Below the pieces are notes generated by a model. The model was not told where the DNA came from. It saw only the letters and a program-made list of their open reading frames with translations, and searched no databases. DNA of 64,000 nt from Vitrella brassicaformis CCMP3155. Lineage: Eukaryota; Protista; Chromerida. The number at the start of each line of letters is the position of its first letter. Within the stretch, counting starts at the first letter, position 1. The DNA is taken from NCBI GenBank assembly GCA_001179505.1, contig CDMY01000791.1, positions 1 to 64,000 of the forward strand, given 5' to 3'. Of the stretch, positions 135 to 49,716 are shown piece after piece. The position numbers and the translations under genes are program-made.

Positions 135-587
135 CCATCAGATCGCTCCATGCATACATGAAGAGAACAGACACATAGCACCTCAGATGTTCCCCGTCCT
201 CCGTGGTGTGAGAGTCGTCACATACCAGACGCCCCCAGACACCCATAGCATAATACCTACTGAGGAGAAGAAAAAGACCAACCAGCCACCAGGACGCGGC
301 TGAACGGAGGGAGGGAAGAGAGGGCGCAGCTACTCAGTCGGTCATGCAGCATGCAGAATGACATGTATATAAGACAGACATACTCGTTGGCCCAACCAAC
401 AACAGCCAAACACACAGGGAGCCATGAGACGGGCCACAAGCAAGCAGAGACGAGCTACTCTGTGAACGGAACACGGCAGATCAGATCAGATCAGTAGGAC
501 GTCATGTGGCTAATCTCTCTCTCCCCCACCCGCCCATCGTTCGGCTGACTGACACTCAGACAGGCTCACATCGACATAGACAATGCG

Positions 588-1085
588 CTAATGATAGCAA
601 GTGCAGTCGCAGGGATGGATGTGATCCTCAAAGGGACGTTCAATGGGGTGATGGTCACACTTACAGTCACAACCCGTATGCCAGCGACCATGACACTCAC
701 ACGGACAGTTGTAGGTACGGCTGTGAAAGTAGTCACAAAATCCCGGCAACCCCCCACCGCACCAACAATCACAGCCATCCTCATGGGAGTGATTGAGGTT
801 GGGTAACACGTTCAACTTTAGAGCCCTCAGTTCCAGACTGTCACCACCCTCCTGCACACACACAGGACAGACACGACAGACACACACATACCCACACAAG
901 GGAGCGACAGGCGGACAGACGCATCCACATCCATCCATGTGACAGAGAGCAGCACAGGCCCATGCATTCCTTACCATCGACGGATCAGTGACGGCCGCGG
1001 CCTCCTGCAGCTTGCGCAGGGGTGTTGCGGCGCACAGAGCACCGGCCATCAGGAGGGCACCAACCAGGCACAGAGGCACCTTCAT
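588..1085 (-). CDS. Small secreted His/Cys-rich protein (family member A), about 124 aa, 2 exons (1085-975, 851-588)
   Basis: Exon 1 MKVPLCLVGALLMAGALCAATPLRKLQEAAAVTDPSM has a signal peptide and RKLQE. A phase-0 GT..AG intron follows. Exon 2 is EGGDSLELRALKLN...HSHEDGCDCWCGGGLPG...CPCEC...CDCKC...HPCDCTCYH, ending in TAG. It is paralogous to 49138-49716. Confidence 0.85.
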   Translation of the reverse strand: MKVPLCLVGALLMAGALCAATPLRKLQEAAAVTDPSMVRNAWACAALCHMDGCGCVCPPVAPLCGYVCVCRVCPVCVQEGGDSLELRALKLNVLPNLNHSHEDGCDCWCGGGLPGFCDYFHSRTYNCPCECHGRWHTGCDCKCDHHPIERPFEDHIHPCDCTCYH

Positions 1086-1363
1086 CGCGGGAGAACAGGC
1101 GAGAAAAGGACAAGGGAAAACAAACTGAGAAGGAAGGAAGGCGGAATGAAGAGTGGAGCTGGGACCTATTGGGATCTGTCCCTCTTCCCATTTCCCACTG
1201 GGAACGGGACACCCAACGTCCGAAACCGAAGGCACACCCAAACGCATGCTCCGTCCAAAATGGGCAATGGGAAGTTCCCAGCTCAGATTCTTCATTCCGC
1301 CTTCCTTCCTTCTCAGTTTGTTTTCCCTTGTCCTTTTCTCGCCTGTTCTCCCGCGATGAAGGT
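1078..1363. repeat. Inverted repeat spanning the divergent promoter: 75-bp identical arms at 1078-1152 and 1289-1363, 136-bp spacer
   Basis: The reverse complement of 1078-1152 equals 1289-1363 (tcttcattccgccttccttcc...gttctcccgcgATGAAGGT). Weaker similarity extends through both first exons (975-1478). Confidence 0.9.
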
Positions 1364-4227
1364 CCTTCTGTGCCTGTTTGGTGCCCTCCTGGTGGCCGGT
1401 GCTCTGTGCGCTGATGACGTGAAGCACCCATCCTCCCTGCGCAAGCTGAGTCCTCAGGGCGTCGCTGATCCGTCGACGGTAAGGACATGCAACATGGCCA
1501 CAACTTGCTCATGCTGCCTCTGCGTCACCGTGGGTTTGCATGCGTCTGTTTATCCGTCGGTCCCTATGTGTGTGTGTGTGTGTGTGTGTATGCATGCAGC
1601 AGGGTGATGAAGCTCCTGTGAGGGCGCTGCATGGACCTCACCGCGACCACGATGATGACCATCACCACGACCATGACTACACCGACCGCGTGGCCCTCGG
1701 TTTCGTCATGACCACCATCGCCGGTAGGTACGCACGTGTGTCGATATGACGCAGATGCCTGATGTGGCGCCGGTCACTCGCTGTTGATGTGCTGTTGTGC
1801 GCGTGCAGGTTTGTCCACTGCTGTGGGCAGTGCGCTCTCCTTCTGCCTTCCCAAGCACAATGGCAAGGTACGTGTGCTGCACGTGTGTTTGAATCCGCAC
1901 GTACTCCGCGATGAATACATGTATGTCTATATCCGCGTGCGGACGCATGCCCACATTATCGGTGTCTGCAGATGCTTGCGGTGTTGTGCATGTCTCTGTC
2001 TGCGGGCGTCATGCTCTACGTGTCGTTCGGGGAGATCCTCAGCAAAAGCATCGTACGATCGATCGACATGCACGCACACGCACTCCCAACAAACAGCGCG
2101 TGCGTGTTTGTACATAAATGCACATTTTGAATGTATTGTGCAATGAATAGGACGAGTTTCGTGAGGCGATTAGCGACGGGGGGGAGGCGTACGCCAACGC
2201 TACGCTGTGCTTTTTCGGCGGTACGCTCACACGCATCCACATGTGGCCACACAAACATACACCTGCACACAAAACAAACAACATACCTACGTGTGCATCA
2301 ATCGACAGGTATCCTTGCGGCGATGCTGCTCGATTACGCCCTGGATTCCATGTTCAAAGTACTTGAAGCCAACACTCACTCCATGGACACACAATGACAT
2401 GCACAAACATCGAATGATGCCGTGACGCGTGTGCTTGCAGTGGAGCCAGACCGAGCCCGAGGCGCCCAGCAACAGCAGCCCAGTGCCCGACACATCGCCC
2501 GATGTACGAAGTGCATAGAACACAGACAGACAGACAGACAGACACGATATGACATGCCACACATAACGATTGGCTGACGTGCATGTACACATATGTGGCT
2601 GCAGAGTGGGGCAGACCGACAGCAGCTTCAAGAGGAACATAACGACACTGAGCATGGTGCGCACACAACAACCAACATCACAACCTGTGTTCGTGTACGT
2701 GAACCCATGGATATGGGCGGATGGATGGATGGAATGGTGGCAGGCGGCCGCGGTGGAGGCCCTCTCGCGCGAGAAAAAGTACTGTGTGGAGAGACACTAG
2801 CTGTGGTGGGTGCGCACACCACATACAACACACGAAGAGACACGCATATGTACGCCCTACATGCGTGTACACGGACGTGCCTCTCTGTATGATGTCCGCA
2901 CACACATGTCATGGATGTACACAGGTGATTGAGCAGTCTCTCTGCGGCGATGATAAGACCAGGACGCCGCCAACCGACGGTGAGGGCGCGTCATTCATAC
3001 GTCCGTTCACACACTCACCCGGACACGTGCATGCGAGTCGATCAACAAATACGCACGTGGTGTGTGTGTGTGTGTGTGTGTACAGATGCTGGGATTCTGG
3101 ACCAGGAGAACAGCACATCAGAAGAGAACATAAAGGAGGTCCGTCCGTCCGTACACCTGACGTGCCGGCCACGTACATACATGTGCGCATGTCATCTGTA
3201 TGTGTTTTTGATTCATTCATACAGCCTCAGAAGGGTTCGTTGGAGAAGCAGCGGGCTGACAAAGCGGCCCTCAAAAACCTCGGGATATTCAGGTACGCAC
3301 ATGGGAACGAGACGCCGACACTGCAATATCGGTTCGGTTTATCACCGATCGACCAGCGGTCTTGCACTAGCCATGCACAACTTCCCCGAAGGTTTGGCCA
3401 CGTTCGCTGCGACACTGGCGGATCCAACCTTCGGACTCGGTACGTGCCACACTCTCGCATCGCACACACGCCAAGGATTTACATTTATTGGTGTGTGCGC
3501 ACAGGGGTGGCCGTTGCCATCGCCATCCACAATATTCCCGAGGGAATTGCCGTCAGGTATACACGAATACGCGACTGACACGCACAGATGGCTCCACGGA
3601 CGGGCACTCTGCTGCCATTGTGTACATTTGATCAGTGTGCCGATCTTCTACGCAACGGGCAGCAAGTGGAAGGCATTCGGTACGTCCGCACACACATGCA
3701 CACGTACAAATTTTATGCTTCTTGTGTGGGTGTGTGGTGTACAGGCTGGTCGCTGCTCAGTGGCATTGCCGAGCCAGTTGGGGCTCTACTAGGTCAGTGA
3801 GTCAAGTGATTGCATCCATCCATTTGTCTGTCCACGCGCTCTCACACATGAATGCCACTCAGGCTACCTGGTGCTGATTCACGTGATGTCGCCCACTGCA
3901 TTCGCCATTCTGTTCGGTACGTCTGTCTGCATGTTTGTGTATGCACCCGTGTGTGCCCACATGCACGCAGTGTTCTTGTGTCTCGATGGGGCTTGGCTTG
4001 CAGGTTTGGTGGGCGGTATCATGATTCATATATGCATCAAGAAGCTGATACCCACCGCACTCAAATACGACCCACAAGTACGCCATCCACACACAGATCC
4101 ATCCTTCCTTCCTCCCATCAACACACGTGTGTGCGTGCGTGGTGTTTAGGATCGTGTGACGTCCAACACGTGTCTGCTGGGCATGGCCGTCATGGCGCTT
4201 TCACTCGTGCTGTTCCAAGTCGTCTGA
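1356..4227 (+). CDS. ZIP-family (ZupT/GufA-like) divalent metal transporter with signal peptide and His-rich N-terminal ectodomain, about 19 exons
   Basis: Spliced reconstruction gives [134 protein letters not shown] and GMAVMALSLVLFQVV, ending in TGA at 4225-4227. HNFPEG/HNIPEG are the canonical ZIP TM4/TM5 motifs. Loop exons at 2441-3290 are less certain. Confidence 0.9.
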
Positions 4228-5849
4228 CTGATTGCTTCTGTATGTGTGAGACGTCAGACGTTCTTCGTACGATTTTAGGCCATGATCTGTCCCTCCATTC
4301 ACACGACAGTGATCCTGACTCTCGAAGTAGTTCGTGCCTCTGTGCGCTTCTTTTTCGGTTTGTCATGTGCGTGTGGGGGGTCCTGGGTGCCTTGGCAGCC
4401 GTCGGTGCCTGTCAGTCATTCGTGTGACGACTTATCTGATCTGCGTGTGACGACTGACTGCACACACCCTGATGAGTGTGCCTGTGCGTGACTGCATGTG
4501 TACGATTCCATGAGGGAAAGAGAGATACACGTTTTTGTGCGTCTGCACACGCGAGGTCGACAGATACCACATGCAAACAAATAAACAAAAGAGCGTTTCG
4601 AGTCTACGTCGTTTGAAGAAGTGGAGTTCAAGCACAGGAACGTCAAGAAGGGAGGGACGGGGGGAGATGAGTCGTCACATCCATCGGAGGGTACACACAC
4701 GGGATGGACACATGAGCTGTGGGATGGGGGGAGACAGAGACACCGACCTGACACTCAAACATATCGAAGTGAATGATCCAATAACGTTTGAGTCCATCTA
4801 TCTATCCATCTGTCGACTTACCCCTCAACATTGATACTGACTCGATCAAGCTTCAGCATCACCGGATCAGCACGACAGTTTTAAGAGGAATGCCCGTCAA
4901 CTGTCATCCATCTGCACATTTCGTTTTCATTTAATTAATGATCCATTGATGTTCGGGCGTCTCCTCATCGTGTCTGTGTGTGTCTCTGTCTACCCATCCC
5001 AACCCCATGTGTCTGTCTAGCCCCCACATAGCAGTCCGTACACTCTGCGCGTGTGACCACGGCTGCTGAGTGACGGCCAGTGTGTGTATGTGCCTGTACG
5101 TACAACATACAAACGCAACCATTGATCAATCACAAAAATGTCTGCCATAGCTATCTGGTGCCAGTGGTCGCGGCGGAGGTTGTGCAGGGTGGGGGAGCGA
5201 CACACTCTTGACCACTCTGTGGTGATCAGATAGACAAGGGCGGAGATGAAGGCAGCTGCGGCTGTGCACCACGTGGCCGATAGCCATATAAAACATACAT
5301 CAAATTTGTGACTCAGGGTGGGGTTTCGCGTATTATATGCCCAAGGTAGCCGTCTTACGTGATTAGCGTTTGGAGCAAGGCGATGAATGGACTGTTGATT
5401 CAGGAGTCGCGAAAACGGACTGACAGGCAGGAAGGTTCATTCAATGAGCATCTCGCTAATAACGAGGCATCTGAGCAGCCACTGACAAACGGCATCATAC
5501 GGCATCACCAAGTCATGACACACACAACCATCCATACCGACTCTCACTGAGGACACGACACACCACACCGCAGACAGAAACTCGTATACCTTTGGTTGGC
5601 CACAGTGAGTGAGTGAGCGAGCGAATGATTCGGTGAGTGAGTGAGCAAGCAGCACCACACTACACTCCTACACCCCACGCAGTTAGCACCATCCATCCAT
5701 CCATCCAGAACACCTCTCGAGAGACCTTCGTCCATCGTGGCCATAGGCACAGCCAGCATTCATCCACGACAACGCAAACAAAAAGAGAGAGAGTTAGGGA
5801 GGGAGGGACGGAGGGAGGGAGTTTCCTGTCTGTCTGGCTGCCTAGGTGG

Positions 5850-23859: not shown

Positions 23860-26800
23860 TCACGCACAGGTACCTGCGGGCTGGGCGGCCGGTGGGGCAC
23901 CGAATGACTGCTCGATCTCCTGATTGGCCATCTGCACGTCCACCTCCGTCGCATGCGGCCCGTTCTGATCGACCGCCATGCCGTTGCTGCTGCTGGTGCC
24001 GCCCTCACCACCCCTGGAAGATGACGGCCTGCTGGGCCACTGACTCCTCGGCGGCACCCGGACGGGCGGGGGCGACTGGGGCGGGGGTGATGTGGGCGTG
24101 GTGGTGGTGGTGGTCTTGGTGCGGCCGCGCATGGCACTTGGTGGAGGGGGGATGCCGCCAGCGAGGCGCGAATCGCCATCCTGGTTCATCAAAAGGAGGG
24201 AGAGAGGGAGAGGCTTAAAGGCTTCTAACATGTCTGTTGTGTACGGGTCTGTCCCTGAGTGGATCGATATCTCACCTCTGCTGCCGATGTCTGCGTGGCC
24301 CCCTGGTAGGTGAAGCCCCCCTGCTGTTGCTGTTGCTGTTGTTGCTGTGCCTGCGTGGTGAGTGGCGCGCCGCCGAGTGTGGGCTGTGTGGTCTGTGCGG
24401 GTGTGGCAGTGGTGTTTTGCGTGGTGTTGTTGCTGTAGGGGTAGTATGTGTTGGACGAGGTGTAGTAGCGGTAATCAGGGTCCTGATGGCATATGGATGG
24501 AAGAAAACACACATAGTATTGAGAGGCGTGGAGGGGCAAGGGTGATGACTGACCTTTAGGTCGATGTCAGGTGTGTCGGATACGATGTCTGTGCCGGCGA
24601 TGGTCATGCGGAGGTGCATGGTGTACGACTGCTGCGCGTTGGCCTCCATGGAGAGACTGCCCTCCAGCAGCTGACCTGCACACACCATGACAACAAAACA
24701 AATCACACCGCACCCCAGACCAGGGTTGTTGTGCATACCAGGGTTGACGGCAAGCGGCGTCCTCAGCAGGAAACGAATCTGATACCTGCAAGCAACCGAA
24801 CGGTAAACGAACAGTAAACATGTGCATGGGTGCATTGACGGCTTCTACGCCACACGAGATCACACCTTACCAGTGCGTGGGTGTGCACCAGGGAGATGTC
24901 GAGAAGCCCAGCTCCTGCTCGCTGCCCTCGAAGATAATGTCAAACCAGCCTGACACGGACAAACACACGAGCGGCGTCCATCCATCCATCCATCCATCTG
25001 TGTATACGTGTCCATCATCCGCCCACGCGCACCTGCGAGCCCATGCACGAGGCACGGAGCGCCGACACGAAACTGGAAGTTGATGGTCATCTGCTCACAG
25101 ACACAAAGACGGACACAAAAACAGCGGGAATGCCTCTGCGCCTTCGAGAGTGCATACACACACGAGTGAGTGCTGTACCGCGAGCAGCGATGACTTGGGC
25201 ATGGTGGTGAAGTCGTATTCCTCGACGTGTGGCGGGCACAGCAGACACGCGGGGTCGATGTAGTCTGCGCACACAGCAAATGCATAGATGGATGTGATCG
25301 ATGGCCATGTCTGCCTGCATCTGCGTGCAATGCTGGCTGTGGGTGTGCTCGTGTTCGCGTATAGCTGACCGACGACAGGTTGCCTGAACTGCTCAGCCGT
25401 GGCCCTGTCAGCAACGGGCGACAAGTCCACACCTGACAGACACACAGAAAGTCACTAGTGACACTGGCGTGCGCCGCGCCACGCACCACCTTGTCTCTCT
25501 GTCACCTACCGAAGAAGTTTTGGTTCTTCCAGAAGGTGTTGCGACCACACATCTCATTAAACAACACCTGTACACACGCGTGCCACCACATGGCAGGCGT
25601 CATATAACTAGTGAGCACGCCCACTCACACCTCACTTGGTCGCTGAATGGCGTCACGCAGAGCTTGCACTTGTTAGGAAACATCTTGCCTGAGCACACAA
25701 ACACACACAGGCACGACACCATCCCACATACATACAATACAGAACTTCGAGTGTGTGGTTCTCAAGGCTGGGTTGCTCACCTCCCGGCTTGAGGAACCGG
25801 TCCCTGGCCTCCAGGTAGGTCTCAATCATCCTCTCGTTGAACAGGAACGTCCCGATCGGCTCAGACACCAACACGTCCACCTTGCCATCCACGAAACAGT
25901 CATCTGCTGCCGGCGCAGCGCTGTTCGCCGCCACCACACCGTTCTGCTGCTGTTGTTGCTGCTGCTGTTGTTGCTGCTGCTGTTGTTGGTCGGGTGTGTG
26001 GGCCTGGGTGTTGTGTTTGAGATGGATTCTCTCGAGCGGCCTGCCCAGCACCTTGATGCGCGAGCCGATGGCGGGGTTGCCGTCACACAGCGCCTGCGCC
26101 ACATCAGCCATGCGCGACGCCTCAACCGCATACCTACAACACACACACATCCACACATCCACACATCCATGTGCATAGCTGTCCCGCCTCTCTCTCTCTG
26201 TGGGCGTGTATGCAATGCAGCTTACACTCTCCTAGCCCCGGCCATGGCAGCGAAGAAGGAGAGGATGCCGGTGCCGGCCCCGACGTCCATGACGGCCTTG
26301 TTGGCGAAGTCGCGGATGTTCTCAGTGATGGCGCGGTAGTAGAGCGTGGTGCGGACGTTGTCCTGTAGCATGTTCATCTGGTTGGACAGCTTGCCGTAGT
26401 AGAGGAAGTACGACTGCACCGTATTGGCGTCCATCCCCTCCAGCGACGACGACTCCATCGGCACCCCCGCAAGCACGCTGCTGCTGCTCGGGAGCTGGGA
26501 AACACCTGAGCGATCCGCAGATGGACACGCAGACAGCTCAACGGGTGAATGGATGGATGGATGGATGGATGGGTGACACACAGGGTCATTCGGTGCGTAC
26601 CCTTGCACCGCTGGTATTCGTTGAGGAATGCGCTTGCGTCCTCCTGTGTGCCGAACTGCATGGCGAAGGTGCGGCTGGTAGCCGCCGACTGCGATGCCCC
26701 TCCCCCTCCNNNNNNNNNNNNNNNNNNNNNNNNNNNNNNNNNNNNNNNNNNNNNNNNNNNNNNNNNNNNNNNNNNNNNNNNNNNNNNNNNNNNNNNNNNN

Positions 26801-46464: not shown

Positions 46465-47532
46465 ATGAAGCTGTTTCTGTGCCTTGTCGGCGCCCTCCTG
46501 GTGGCCGGTGCTGCTGCTGACGTGAAGCACCCACCCTCCCTGCGCAAGCTGCAGGAGTCTACGGCCGTCACTGATCCGTCGACCGTAAGAAATTCACGGC
46601 CACCCACCTGTGGTCTCTCTGCACTATGCATGTGCACGCATTTGTCTGTCTGTCTGTCTGTCGCTGCTTCGTGTGTGTCTGTCATGTGTTTGCAGGAGGT
46701 GACTGTCCCCGAGGAGCCTGAGATCCCTCCTGAGGACTCCGAAGGTGGCGACGAAGATGACGACGATCTTGAGGTGGGTGCGGGAGCACTCAGCCACACA
46801 CACACATACTTAGCGCTCGCAGACCAGCCATGTGCCTGTGTGCGGGTGTTTGTTTGTCTGAGTACAGGAAGGTGATGACGCCTTTACCCCAAAGGTGGGC
46901 GAACAGCACTTTGCACATAACACATACAGACTGTGAACGTCTGTCTGTCTGTATCGATGTGTGTATCATGTACTACGTGTGCAGGAGGGTGACGGCGAGG
47001 AGCGGAGGGCGCTGGGGACCTGGTGCGGGCACCACTGTCACCACCCCTGGTGGTGGTACCATCATCACCACCCCTGGTGGTGGCACCCTCACCATCACGG
47101 CCACCATGGACACCACCACCACGACCATGGACACCACCGGATGCTCTCCGAGGTGGGCAAGCGAACAACATAACACATATAGACAGCGGCACTCACGCCA
47201 GACACAGAACCATGTACGTACGTATGTCTGTCTGTCCGTCTGTCTGTCTGTCTATCTGCATGGCTGTGTGTGCAGGAGGGTGATGAACCTCCTGTGAGAG
47301 AGCTGCATCCCCACTATCACTGTCACTGGGTCTGGTCGTGCCACCGGATGCTCTCCGCAGAGGTGGACGAACACGACACCACACACACAGGCAGCGACCC
47401 TCACCCCAGACACAGAGCCTTGCACGTCTGTCTGTCTGCCTGCGTGTGTGTGTGCAGGAGGCTGCTGAAGTTCCTGTAAGAGAGCTGCATCCCCACCCTC
47501 ACTGTCACTGGGTCTGGTCGTGCCACCGCTGA
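46465..47532 (+). CDS. Secreted multi-module His/Trp/Cys-rich peptide precursor (family member C), about 184 aa, 6 exons
   Basis: Exons 46465-46584, 46696-46773, 46868-46894, 46985-47152, 47276-47362 and 47458-47532 are all phase 0 with canonical GT/AG. Same leader as members A, D and the ZIP gene. Confidence 0.82.
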
Positions 47533-49137: not shown

Positions 49138-49716
49138 ATGAAGCCGCTTCTGTGCCTGGTTGGTGCCCTCCTGGTGGCCGGTGCTGCTGATGACGTGAAG
49201 CACCCATCCTCCCTGCGCAAGCTGCAGGAGTCGACGGTAAGCAATGCATGACCGCTTGCGCTGCTCTCTAGGCCGCTATGCATGTGCATTCGTGTGTCTG
49301 TCTGTCGCTGTCTTGTCATGTGTGTCTGTCTGCATGTGTCTGTGCAGGAGGGTGATGACGATCCTGAAGTGAGGGCTCTACAACCCGGCCACCACGACCA
49401 CCACCATCCCCCCCCAAGCATCAAACCCGGCCAACACGACCGCCACCATCACCCCCCAAGCATCAAACCCAAACCCGGCCACCACGACCACCACCATCCC
49501 CCCCCAAGAATCAACTTCCACTCCCATGAGGATGACTGTGATTGCTGGTGCGGTGGGGGGTTGCCGGGAAAAGATACCCACGGTAGCCAGCGCACCTACA
49601 ACTGTCCGTGCGAGTGTCGTCATCACTGGCGTATGGGTTGTGACTGCAAGTGTGGCCATCACCACCACGAGGGTCCTTACACCCTCTATCATCCCTGCGA
49701 CTGCACCTGCTACTAG
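49138..49716 (+). CDS. Small secreted His/Pro/Cys-rich protein (family member D), about 155 aa, 2 exons (49138-49236, 49348-49716)
   Basis: MKPLLCLVGALLVAGAADDVKHPSSLRKLQEST, a phase-0 intron, then EGDDDPEVRALQ, three imperfect PGHHDHHHPP repeats and the 12-Cys domain shared with member A. Confidence 0.85.

Follow-up and report, generated by a model that had tools for sequence, protein, structure and literature searches.

A ZupT-type ZIP transporter of Vitrella brassicaformis with an N-terminus probably gained by in-frame 5' fusion to a secreted peptide gene

Results

We analysed a window of 64,000 nucleotides (nt) from the chromerid alga Vitrella brassicaformis CCMP3155 (contig CDMY01000791.1, positions 1 to 64,000 of the forward strand; C791 below), focusing on the 5' end of ZIP791, a gene for a ZIP-type transporter whose N-terminus resembles that of a family of secreted peptides. 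The genome searched comprised 72.7 Mb in 1064 contigs. Genes of this alga contain many short GT-AG introns. ZIP791 lies on the plus strand and has 19 exons, which form an open frame of 421 codons from the ATG at 1356 to the stop codon at 4225-4227; 18 of its 18 introns are of the GT-AG type. Divergent to it, on the minus strand with its ATG at 1085, lies a gene of the peptide family, member A. Exon 1 of ZIP791 (1356-1478) translates to MKVLLCLFGALLVAGALCADDVKHPSSLRKLSPQGVADPST, and exon 2 (1600-1723) opens with QGDEAPVRALHGPHRDHDDDHHHDHDY and then runs into the first transmembrane segment (TM1); both translations are exactly those quoted in an earlier reading of this sequence, hereafter the original prediction. 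Exons 3-19 (1809-4227, plus strand) encode the remainder of TM1 through to TM8, including a series of loop exons (7-12).

Profile, structure and protein searches with ZIP791 were carried out exon by exon. The NCBIfam ZupT profile NF003243 (266 positions) was matched colinearly by single exons with expectation values (E) of 7e-8 to 0.015, namely at profile positions 39-60 (exon 4), 128-153 (exon 13), 221-243 (exon 18) and 247-266 (exon 19); these are matches of separate exons, while the profile's cut-off of 252 bits applies to whole proteins. PF02535 was matched weakly by single exons. The motifs HNFPEG (exon 13, TM4) and HNIPEG (exon 14, TM5) align to HNLPEG and QDVPEG of BbZIP, which was also the top match, albeit a weak one (E 0.15), in a PDB search with the TM4 exon. 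Eight hydrophobic segments could be read by eye from the exon translations. The N-terminus is not short, and the loop between TM3 and TM4 is long, with about 110 residues spread over six small exons (7-12). Based on the colinear profile matches, the two motifs and the weak BbZIP matches, ZIP791 appears to be a ZupT/GufA-type ZIP with about 66 residues added before TM1, these residues being extra because the profile itself starts at TM1.

The 5' end of the gene can be divided into a series of parts, all on the plus strand. A 5' untranslated region (5'UTR) common to the peptide genes extends at least from 1289 to 1355 and is covered by an RNA contig (1289-1448) without differences. It is followed by the signal peptide MKVLLCLFGALLVAGALC (1356-1412), in which an n-region, an h-region and small residues at positions -3 (A) and -1 (C) can be read from the sequence; cleavage is predicted after Cys19 (A-x-C) and would remove residues 1-19. 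The pro-segment ADDVKHPSSLRKLSPQGVADPST (1413-1478) closes exon 1 in phase 0 and is homologous to ADDVKHPSSLRKLQEST of member D and A(A)DVKHPPSLRKLQESTAVTDPST of members C, F and G. Intron 1 (1479-1599, GT-AG; RNA joint 1478|1600) occupies a position common to the peptide genes and is 95% identical to the corresponding intron of ZIP844, a close paralogue on contig C844. Exon 2 starts with 11 codons of a peptide-family module, QGDEAPVRALH (1600-1632), continues with 42 nt of His/Asp-rich low-complexity sequence of ambiguous origin (GPHRDHDDDHHHDH, 1633-1674), which we call the fusion interval, and ends with a putative remnant of the ancestral first ZIP exon that includes the start of TM1 (1675-1723). 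Intron 2 (1724-1808, phase 1; RNA joint 1724|1811) corresponds to the first coding-region intron of paralogues lacking the leader and uses the same GCCG|GT donor. From the leader ATG up to TM1 the frame contains no further ATG; those that follow lie within TM1 and, beyond it, at 1972. Plastid targeting of ZIP791 by a signal plus transit peptide was considered and rejected, since the segment following the signal peptide is acidic.

The 5'UTR, exon 1 and the opening of exon 2 match seven secreted His/Cys-rich peptide genes (A and C-H). A DNA search of the genome with 1289-1480 returned 10 places, 9 of them full leader exons: ZIP791 and members A, C and D in the window, ZIP844 and members E, F and G on C844, and member H on contig C543. 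Exon 1 had been proposed in the original prediction to be homologous to that of members A, C and D, and the nine full-length copies bear this out (E 1e-75 to 1e-21 for DNA and 1e-20 to 5e-3 for protein). Searching with the leader pattern yielded 4 matches in the window against 0.03 expected. In the alignment of the leaders, homology reaches from the 5'UTR through signal peptide and pro-segment (…LRKL…DPST) to the donor site, and ZIP791 conforms to the family pattern MK.LLCL.GALL.AG... LRKL ... DPST with its phase-0 end. The opening of exon 2 agrees with exon 5 of member C at 29/33 nt by hand count (QGDEAPVRALH versus EGDEPPVRELH), a likeness that had likewise been pointed out at the protein level. 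This module, [EQ]G[DG]xxx[VL]R[AE]L, opens the next exon in ZIP791, ZIP844, A, D and E as well as exons 4-6 of C. What ZIP791 lacks is the small soluble Cys/His/Trp-rich payload followed by a stop; instead its frame runs into a ZIP core of apparently eight TM segments. Judged from these sequences, ZIP791 is best regarded as a chimera and not as a proper member of the peptide family, and we put the probability that its N-terminus derives from an in-frame 5' gene fusion with a lineage-specific secreted His/Cys-rich peptide gene at roughly 80%.

Which partner gave and which received can be addressed using the ZIP paralogues, a comparison already suggested in the original prediction. Among about ten ZupT-like loci in the genome, the leader is present only on C791 and C844. 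The ZupT-like loci on C698, C555 and C282 were left out of the comparison as their N-termini could not be read without gene models. Over 223 core residues, compared exon-wise, identity to the ZIP791 pair is 97% within the pair (ZIP791-ZIP844), 86% for C595, 69% for C289 and 54% for C374, and the tree calculated from these residues is ((ZIP791,ZIP844),C595,(C289,C374)). C595 shares all intron positions and starts with MMDDYGDRV (ATGATGGACGACTAC…), after which an intron follows. C289 starts with MDDEDDYRV (MDDEDDYRVGVGLGLSALAG), is interrupted by an intron at the same GCCG|GT donor and has an in-frame TGA 18 nt upstream of its ATG. The local DNA alignment between ZIP791 and C595 runs from 1675 (codons D67-Y68) through exon 3. 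Homology to the peptide family thus ends at about 1632 and homology to the other ZIPs starts at 1675, within three codons of the C595 start codon. As C595 and C289 are leaderless and start where ZIP791 homology begins, capture of a peptide leader by the ZIP, with one gain on the ZIP791/ZIP844 stem, is the most parsimonious reading of these sequences. The leaders of the peptides vary far more: their 5'UTRs and pro-segments each come in two types, and their DNA identities are 43-89%. This diversity, together with the repeated opening of phase-0 exons by the module in member C, fits an older peptide family that would have acted as donor.

The opposite direction, in which the soluble peptides arose by partial duplication of the 5' end of a ZIP gene in a prion-like manner, appears improbable, although it is the alternative that fares best. 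A shared module looks the same either way, a 5' duplication ending inside exon 2 could found a new gene, and the proposed descent of prion proteins from a ZIP offers a precedent (PMC2745754, PMC3203146). However, the leader-bearing ZIPs are a young pair (97%) nested within leaderless C595 and C289, and this direction would call for an extra loss in which a start codon was restored at exactly the same position. Further, the peptide leaders are much more diverse, and member C uses the module three times over as a phase-0 exon start in its own right. The original prediction had left open whether the transporter captured a leader or the soluble family budded off a ZIP ectodomain; capture is favoured by our comparison, whereas prion-like budding fits poorly with leaderless C595 and C289.

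It had also been assumed that ZupT-type ZIPs lack signal peptides and ectodomains. This holds for the bacterial ZupT profile, C595 and C289 but not for C374, whose first exon (about 74543-74877; L023:3044-3378) is unrelated to the peptide leader and encodes, ahead of TM1, a start resembling a signal peptide (MSLVRLSAAVFCLTAW...) and a long stretch rich in His (HSHTHDHGHTHSHDHDHTHSHDHGHEHAHE). His-rich N-terminal tails on ZupT-like ZIPs thus look to have arisen at least twice in Vitrella. The C374 tail makes that of ZIP791 less surprising, yet it supports the usefulness of such tails. In C595, a run of N lies just upstream of the TM4 exon (L024:1700-2000), and the first HNxPEG motif is not visible.

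Members of the family and ZIP genes are arranged head-to-head around quasi-palindromic spacers in three cases: G/E and F/ZIP844 on C844 and A/ZIP791 in the window. The A/ZIP791 pair contains an inverted repeat of 123 nt whose arms (1030-1152 and 1289-1411) are 97% complementary. Its left arm, read on the minus strand, holds the start of the signal-peptide coding sequence of member A (1030-1085; translation MKVPLCLVGALLMAGALCAATPLRKLQEAAAVTDPSM) and the 5'UTR of this gene (1086-1152). The core between the arms (1153-1288) is itself quasi-palindromic, with an inner repeat at 1184-1207 and 1251-1274, and judging from the arrangement is presumably a bidirectional promoter. The motif AATGGGAAG occurs on both strands of the core and is weakly enriched in the window, while GGGACAGATC is not above chance in the window; given weak enrichment and chance level, respectively, neither is claimed as a regulatory element. 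An GGGCAGATCC-type motif is found about 90-130 nt upstream of several ATGs of the family, in case of member A as GGGACAGATC at 1173-1182 on the minus strand. A transcript contig from the Joint Genome Institute (L025:1-1115; 1.1 kb) corresponds to spliced peptide F (P0004), and its 89-nt 5'UTR starts at GGGCAGATCC. The motif may mark the transcription start.

Sequence identity along the leaders is uneven. The 5'UTR of ZIP791 is 100% identical to that of member A, 82% to that of ZIP844, 76% to that of D and 75% to that of F, a distribution from which gene conversion among the leaders would seem to be still active. Between ZIP791 and ZIP844, identity is 95-98% from exon 1 through intron 1 to exon 2 (1356-1723 versus L019:4878-5247; leader exons 98%, intron 1 95%), compared with 75-87% for loop exons and 43-89% for many other introns, which suggests a recent conversion tract over the leader. 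The 5'UTR of ZIP791, in contrast, was converted to the version of member A. One could go further and attribute the peptide-like leader to conversion only, a ZIP having owned an unrelated leader, like that of C374, which was then overwritten from the neighbouring peptide gene. The identity of the 5'UTR to that of A rather than to that of ZIP844 would agree with this, and C374 shows that other leaders occur on Vitrella ZupT-like ZIPs. We nevertheless consider this explanation very unlikely. Conversion requires prior homology and the C374 leader is unrelated, C595 and C289 are without any leader, and the exon 1-intron 1-exon 2 architecture and phase match those of the peptide genes.

Transcript evidence was obtained by comparing four public sequencing runs over 500-4400. 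Runs X1, X2 and X8 contain GT..AG joints that are missing from the DNA run X3 and hence include complementary DNA (cDNA). Thirteen such joints in all are listed in the RNA contigs. Record 24 of X8 joins 1378-1478 to 1604-1724, its exon 1 part carrying the ZIP-specific SPQGVADPST, and record 10 of X2 joins exon 2 to exons 3, 4 and 5 (1724|1811, 1869|1976, 2052|2151). The splicing of exon 2 to exon 3 and, more generally, of a peptide-family leader onto the transporter body, both anticipated in the original prediction, are thus supported by joints running from exon 1 through to exon 5, the exon 1-2 and exon 2-3 joints being read on letters of the twin copy ZIP844. Transcription of the window copy is indicated by a contig over 1289-1448 without difference (X1 record 2) and by the presence of both letters at 3372. 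Joints between exons 11, 12 and 13 were found on window-copy sequence, the exon 12 piece having no differing letters where exons 11-12 are 75-87% identical to the twin. No ZIP cDNA was found in metagenome contigs scanned with a 29-mer from exon 2 and a 24-mer from exon 18, though records of this genome were possibly excluded from these scans.

Two further observations concern the runs themselves. In X1 and X2, one RNA contig is exact on the ZIP791 5'UTR and exon 1 and then continues into spliced exons 1-2 of member D, with its loose end at 1448; it is most likely a de Bruijn chimera formed via a shared 39-mer, a real hybrid transcript being a less likely option. Run X8 contains spliced transcripts and yet also a contig across the intergenic core (1123-1318), where the depth of X1 and X2 is about zero. 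This points either to transcription across the presumed bidirectional promoter in the sample concerned or to genomic DNA within the run.

The same data bear on whether there is a fusion at all. It had been noted that the prediction would fail if 1356-1749 were a standalone peptide gene with the ZIP starting from a separate downstream ATG. Reading through intron 2 does give a short open reading frame that ends ...TTIAGRYARVSI*. However, the RNA contigs contain the exon 1-exon 2 joint and lead from exon 2 into exons 3, 4 and 5, TM1 is split between exons 2 and 3, and with downstream in-frame ATGs only inside TM1 or at 1972, a separate start would yield a ZIP without TM1. We therefore regard a standalone peptide gene as highly improbable. 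Least probable of all is an artefact of assembly that joined a peptide 5' end to a ZIP, for even if de Bruijn contigs do form chimeras among paralogues, as in the ZIP791/member D contig, the arrangement is found at two independent loci (C791 and C844), contigs of the DNA run cover the region and a spliced RNA contig joins the ZIP-specific exon 1 to the ZIP-specific exon 2.

Turning to the peptide family itself, three members lie in the window. Member A (588-1085, minus strand) encodes a secreted CxCxC/His-rich peptide in two exons separated by an intron at 852-974, and a spliced RNA contig (X8 record 22) joins 850|974. Member D (P0001; 49138-49716, plus strand) has two exons and encodes a secreted His/Cys-rich peptide of 155 residues that matches an annotated Vitrella brassicaformis CCMP3155 protein at 100%. 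Member C (46465-47530, plus strand) is a multi-exon gene that combines the common leader with three repeated exons of the type EGD..VR(A/E)L plus H/W/C-rich sequence. Its part from 46985 to 47530 consists of repeated phase-0 exons in which an acidic EGD..VR(A/E)L spacer is followed by a His/Trp/Cys-rich stretch (e.g. HPHYHCHWVWSCHRMLSAE), a layout that resembles a polyprotein precursor for several small peptides. A Pfam search of the leader exons and the peptides (A and D) returned no family. Word searches gave no candidates for exon 2 of member A and only D itself for exon 2 of member D, a full-length search with D found only Vitrella-type records (P0002-P0004), and an ESM Atlas search for D gave no usable look-alike. 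Exon 2 of ZIP791 had 0 matches among 1.84 billion representative proteins, a result of little weight as even the alga's own protein is not among them.

Weaker likenesses are confined to the signal peptide. An unrelated secreted-looking gene on C908 (about 24864-25059; L020:2365-2560), starting MNTQGLLCLLGALLLAAAVCAEPSS..., shares only the signal-peptide core (55 nt at 88%), and three further weak protein matches on C286, C799 and C392 cover the signal peptide only. The pro-segments of peptides A, C, D, F and G contain LRKLQE, whereas the ZIPs read LRKLSP; in the window, this site lies at 1434-1448, 46540-46554 and 49213-49227 as well as at 1013-1027 on the minus strand. LRKLQE fits the apicomplexan export and processing motif RxLxE/Q/D, and a second RxL is found in the exon 2 module (VRAL, VREL, LRAL). 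That these motifs are protease processing sites is speculation.

Discussion

The following history would account for these observations. A ZupT-type ZIP that originally began M(M)DD..DY-TM1 would have captured the promoter, the 5'UTR, the signal-peptide/pro-segment exon, intron 1 and at least 11 codons of exon 2 of a peptide gene, with the join at its old start codon inside what is now exon 2 (1633-1674). The event would fall after the split from leaderless C595 and before the duplication that gave rise to ZIP791 and ZIP844. Most likely, a deletion or recombination would have connected the plus-strand member of a head-to-head peptide pair to a downstream ZIP, such that exon 2 of the peptide gene was joined in frame to the start codon of the ZIP; this fits because the ZIP sits where the plus-strand peptide gene of the pair would be. 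In the original prediction, the ectodomain was seen as exon-shuffled. That part has to be revised: since the junction lies within exon 2 at the ancestral start codon and not at an intron, and since promoter and 5'UTR were included, a 5' gene fusion describes the event better than intron-mediated exon shuffling. A candidate relic of the old start was also inspected at the junction. The start codons of C595 read G-ATG-ATG-GAC (L024:3578-3587, minus strand), and GATGATGAC (1654-1662, codons D-D-D) could be set against ATGATGGAC of C595 as a relic displaced by a single base; being too short and too biased in composition, it was rejected.

Several points weigh against the fusion as outlined. The start of C595 was read from genomic DNA only, its upstream sequence extends just 580 nt before the ATG to the end of the contig, and a possible acceptor 32 nt upstream of this ATG makes another upstream exon conceivable. 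The comparison of ZIPs comprises Vitrella paralogues only. Intron 1 is conserved like exons 1-2, and the likeness of the leaders may reflect conversion and not selection; mosaic gene conversion among the leaders also blurs their phylogeny. Finally, within exon 2 the RNA contigs carry the letters of the C844 paralogue (1664G, 1681G, 1689T), and thus the exon 1-2-3 joints are shown for this twin, which has identical splice boundaries.

With regard to function, the fusion would provide ZIP791 with a cleavable signal peptide (residues 1-19) that lets an acidic, His-rich N-terminal tail of about 49 residues (20-68) cross the membrane, a signal peptide being needed because a charged tail of this length must be translocated. 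ZIPs, including those of the BbZIP type, have their N-terminus on the outside. The same topology can be deduced for ZIP791, where it fits the acidic flank before TM1 and the basic loop after it (PKHNGK). The end of the tail directly before TM1, HGPHRDHDDDHHHDHDY, contains 7 His and 6 Asp in 17 residues and, on the outer or lumenal face, could act as a low-affinity Zn2+ collector; zinc binding by the tail is suggested by this composition. The common promoter and 5'UTR further suggest that the ZIP is co-expressed with secreted His/Cys peptides. Taken one step further, one may tentatively envisage zincophore-type metal acquisition in a chromerid alga, in which an importer and its partner peptides share one promoter and prepro-leader and the tail of the importer serves as docking or relay site, although we regard this as rather unlikely. 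In this scheme, importer and peptides would be expressed and sorted together, perhaps also processed together at the conserved RxL motifs (LRKLQE, VRAL), and the His-rich tail of the transporter would receive metal from the peptides.

The fusion is of interest as a base-resolved and dated case in which a polytopic transporter would have gained a signal peptide and an ectodomain from the 5' end of a neighbouring peptide gene, with leaderless sister copies in the same genome available for comparison. By sharing promoter and 5'UTR with His/Cys peptides, ZIP791 becomes part of a candidate system for scavenging metal outside the cell in a free-living alga related to the apicomplexan parasites. This fusion is recent and restricted to one lineage, and its role in metal uptake is hypothetical.

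Among known systems, the core of ZIP791 is closest to bacterial ZupT/GufA (ZIP11) ZIPs (BbZIP 5TSA), with which it shares a colinear core, HNxPEG motifs and eight hydrophobic segments. In ZupT, C595 and C289, TM1 is preceded by just a few residues, whereas ZIP791 differs by its roughly 66 N-terminal residues and its long TM3-TM4 loop.

A functional analogy only can be drawn to streptococcal PhtD-AdcAII, where a surface protein rich in His is tied genetically to a component of zinc uptake and a hand-over of Zn2+ has been proposed (PMC3842936), as this is an operon of bacteria that involves an ABC importer and in which no leader sequence is shared. A parallel in gene order is provided by fungal PRA1-ZRT1, where the genes for a ZIP importer and for a secreted protein that binds metal lie head-to-head round a shared intergenic region (PMC5751234). 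A divergent pair of secreted peptide and ZIP is likewise found at A/ZIP791 and F/ZIP844, with suggested modular co-expression. The Vitrella peptides have neither homology to Pra1 nor a Pfam match, and the ZIP is of the ZupT and not the Zrt1 type. Further, Pra1 and Zrt1 share no sequence, whereas the Vitrella importer and peptides share promoter-proximal DNA, 5'UTR, signal peptide and pro-segment.

In case of prion proteins, for which descent from the ectodomain of a LIV-1 ZIP has been proposed (PMC2745754, PMC3203146), a soluble or secreted family and a ZIP share an N-terminal ectodomain module as in Vitrella. Here, however, the ZIP would be the recipient, the event would be a genomic 5' fusion that kept its introns and not a retroposition, and it is young and confined to one alga. 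LIV-1 ZIPs themselves (ZIP4, ZIP5, ZIP6, ZIP10) carry a signal peptide and a His-rich extracellular domain (PMC4915132), and ZIP791 resembles them in the order of signal peptide, His-containing N-terminal ectodomain and ZIP core. By analogy, its ectodomain probably helps to capture metal. ZIP791 is not a member of this group, as TM5 reads HNIPEG instead of the LIV-1 motif HEXPHEXGD, and its ectodomain consists of about 49 low-complexity residues compared with the folded HRD or PAL domain of LIV-1 proteins. The signal peptide and ectodomain of ZIP791 thus appear analogous and not homologous to those of LIV-1 transporters, having an independent origin by leader capture, and a LIV-1-like architecture would have been reached by convergence from a ZupT-type core.

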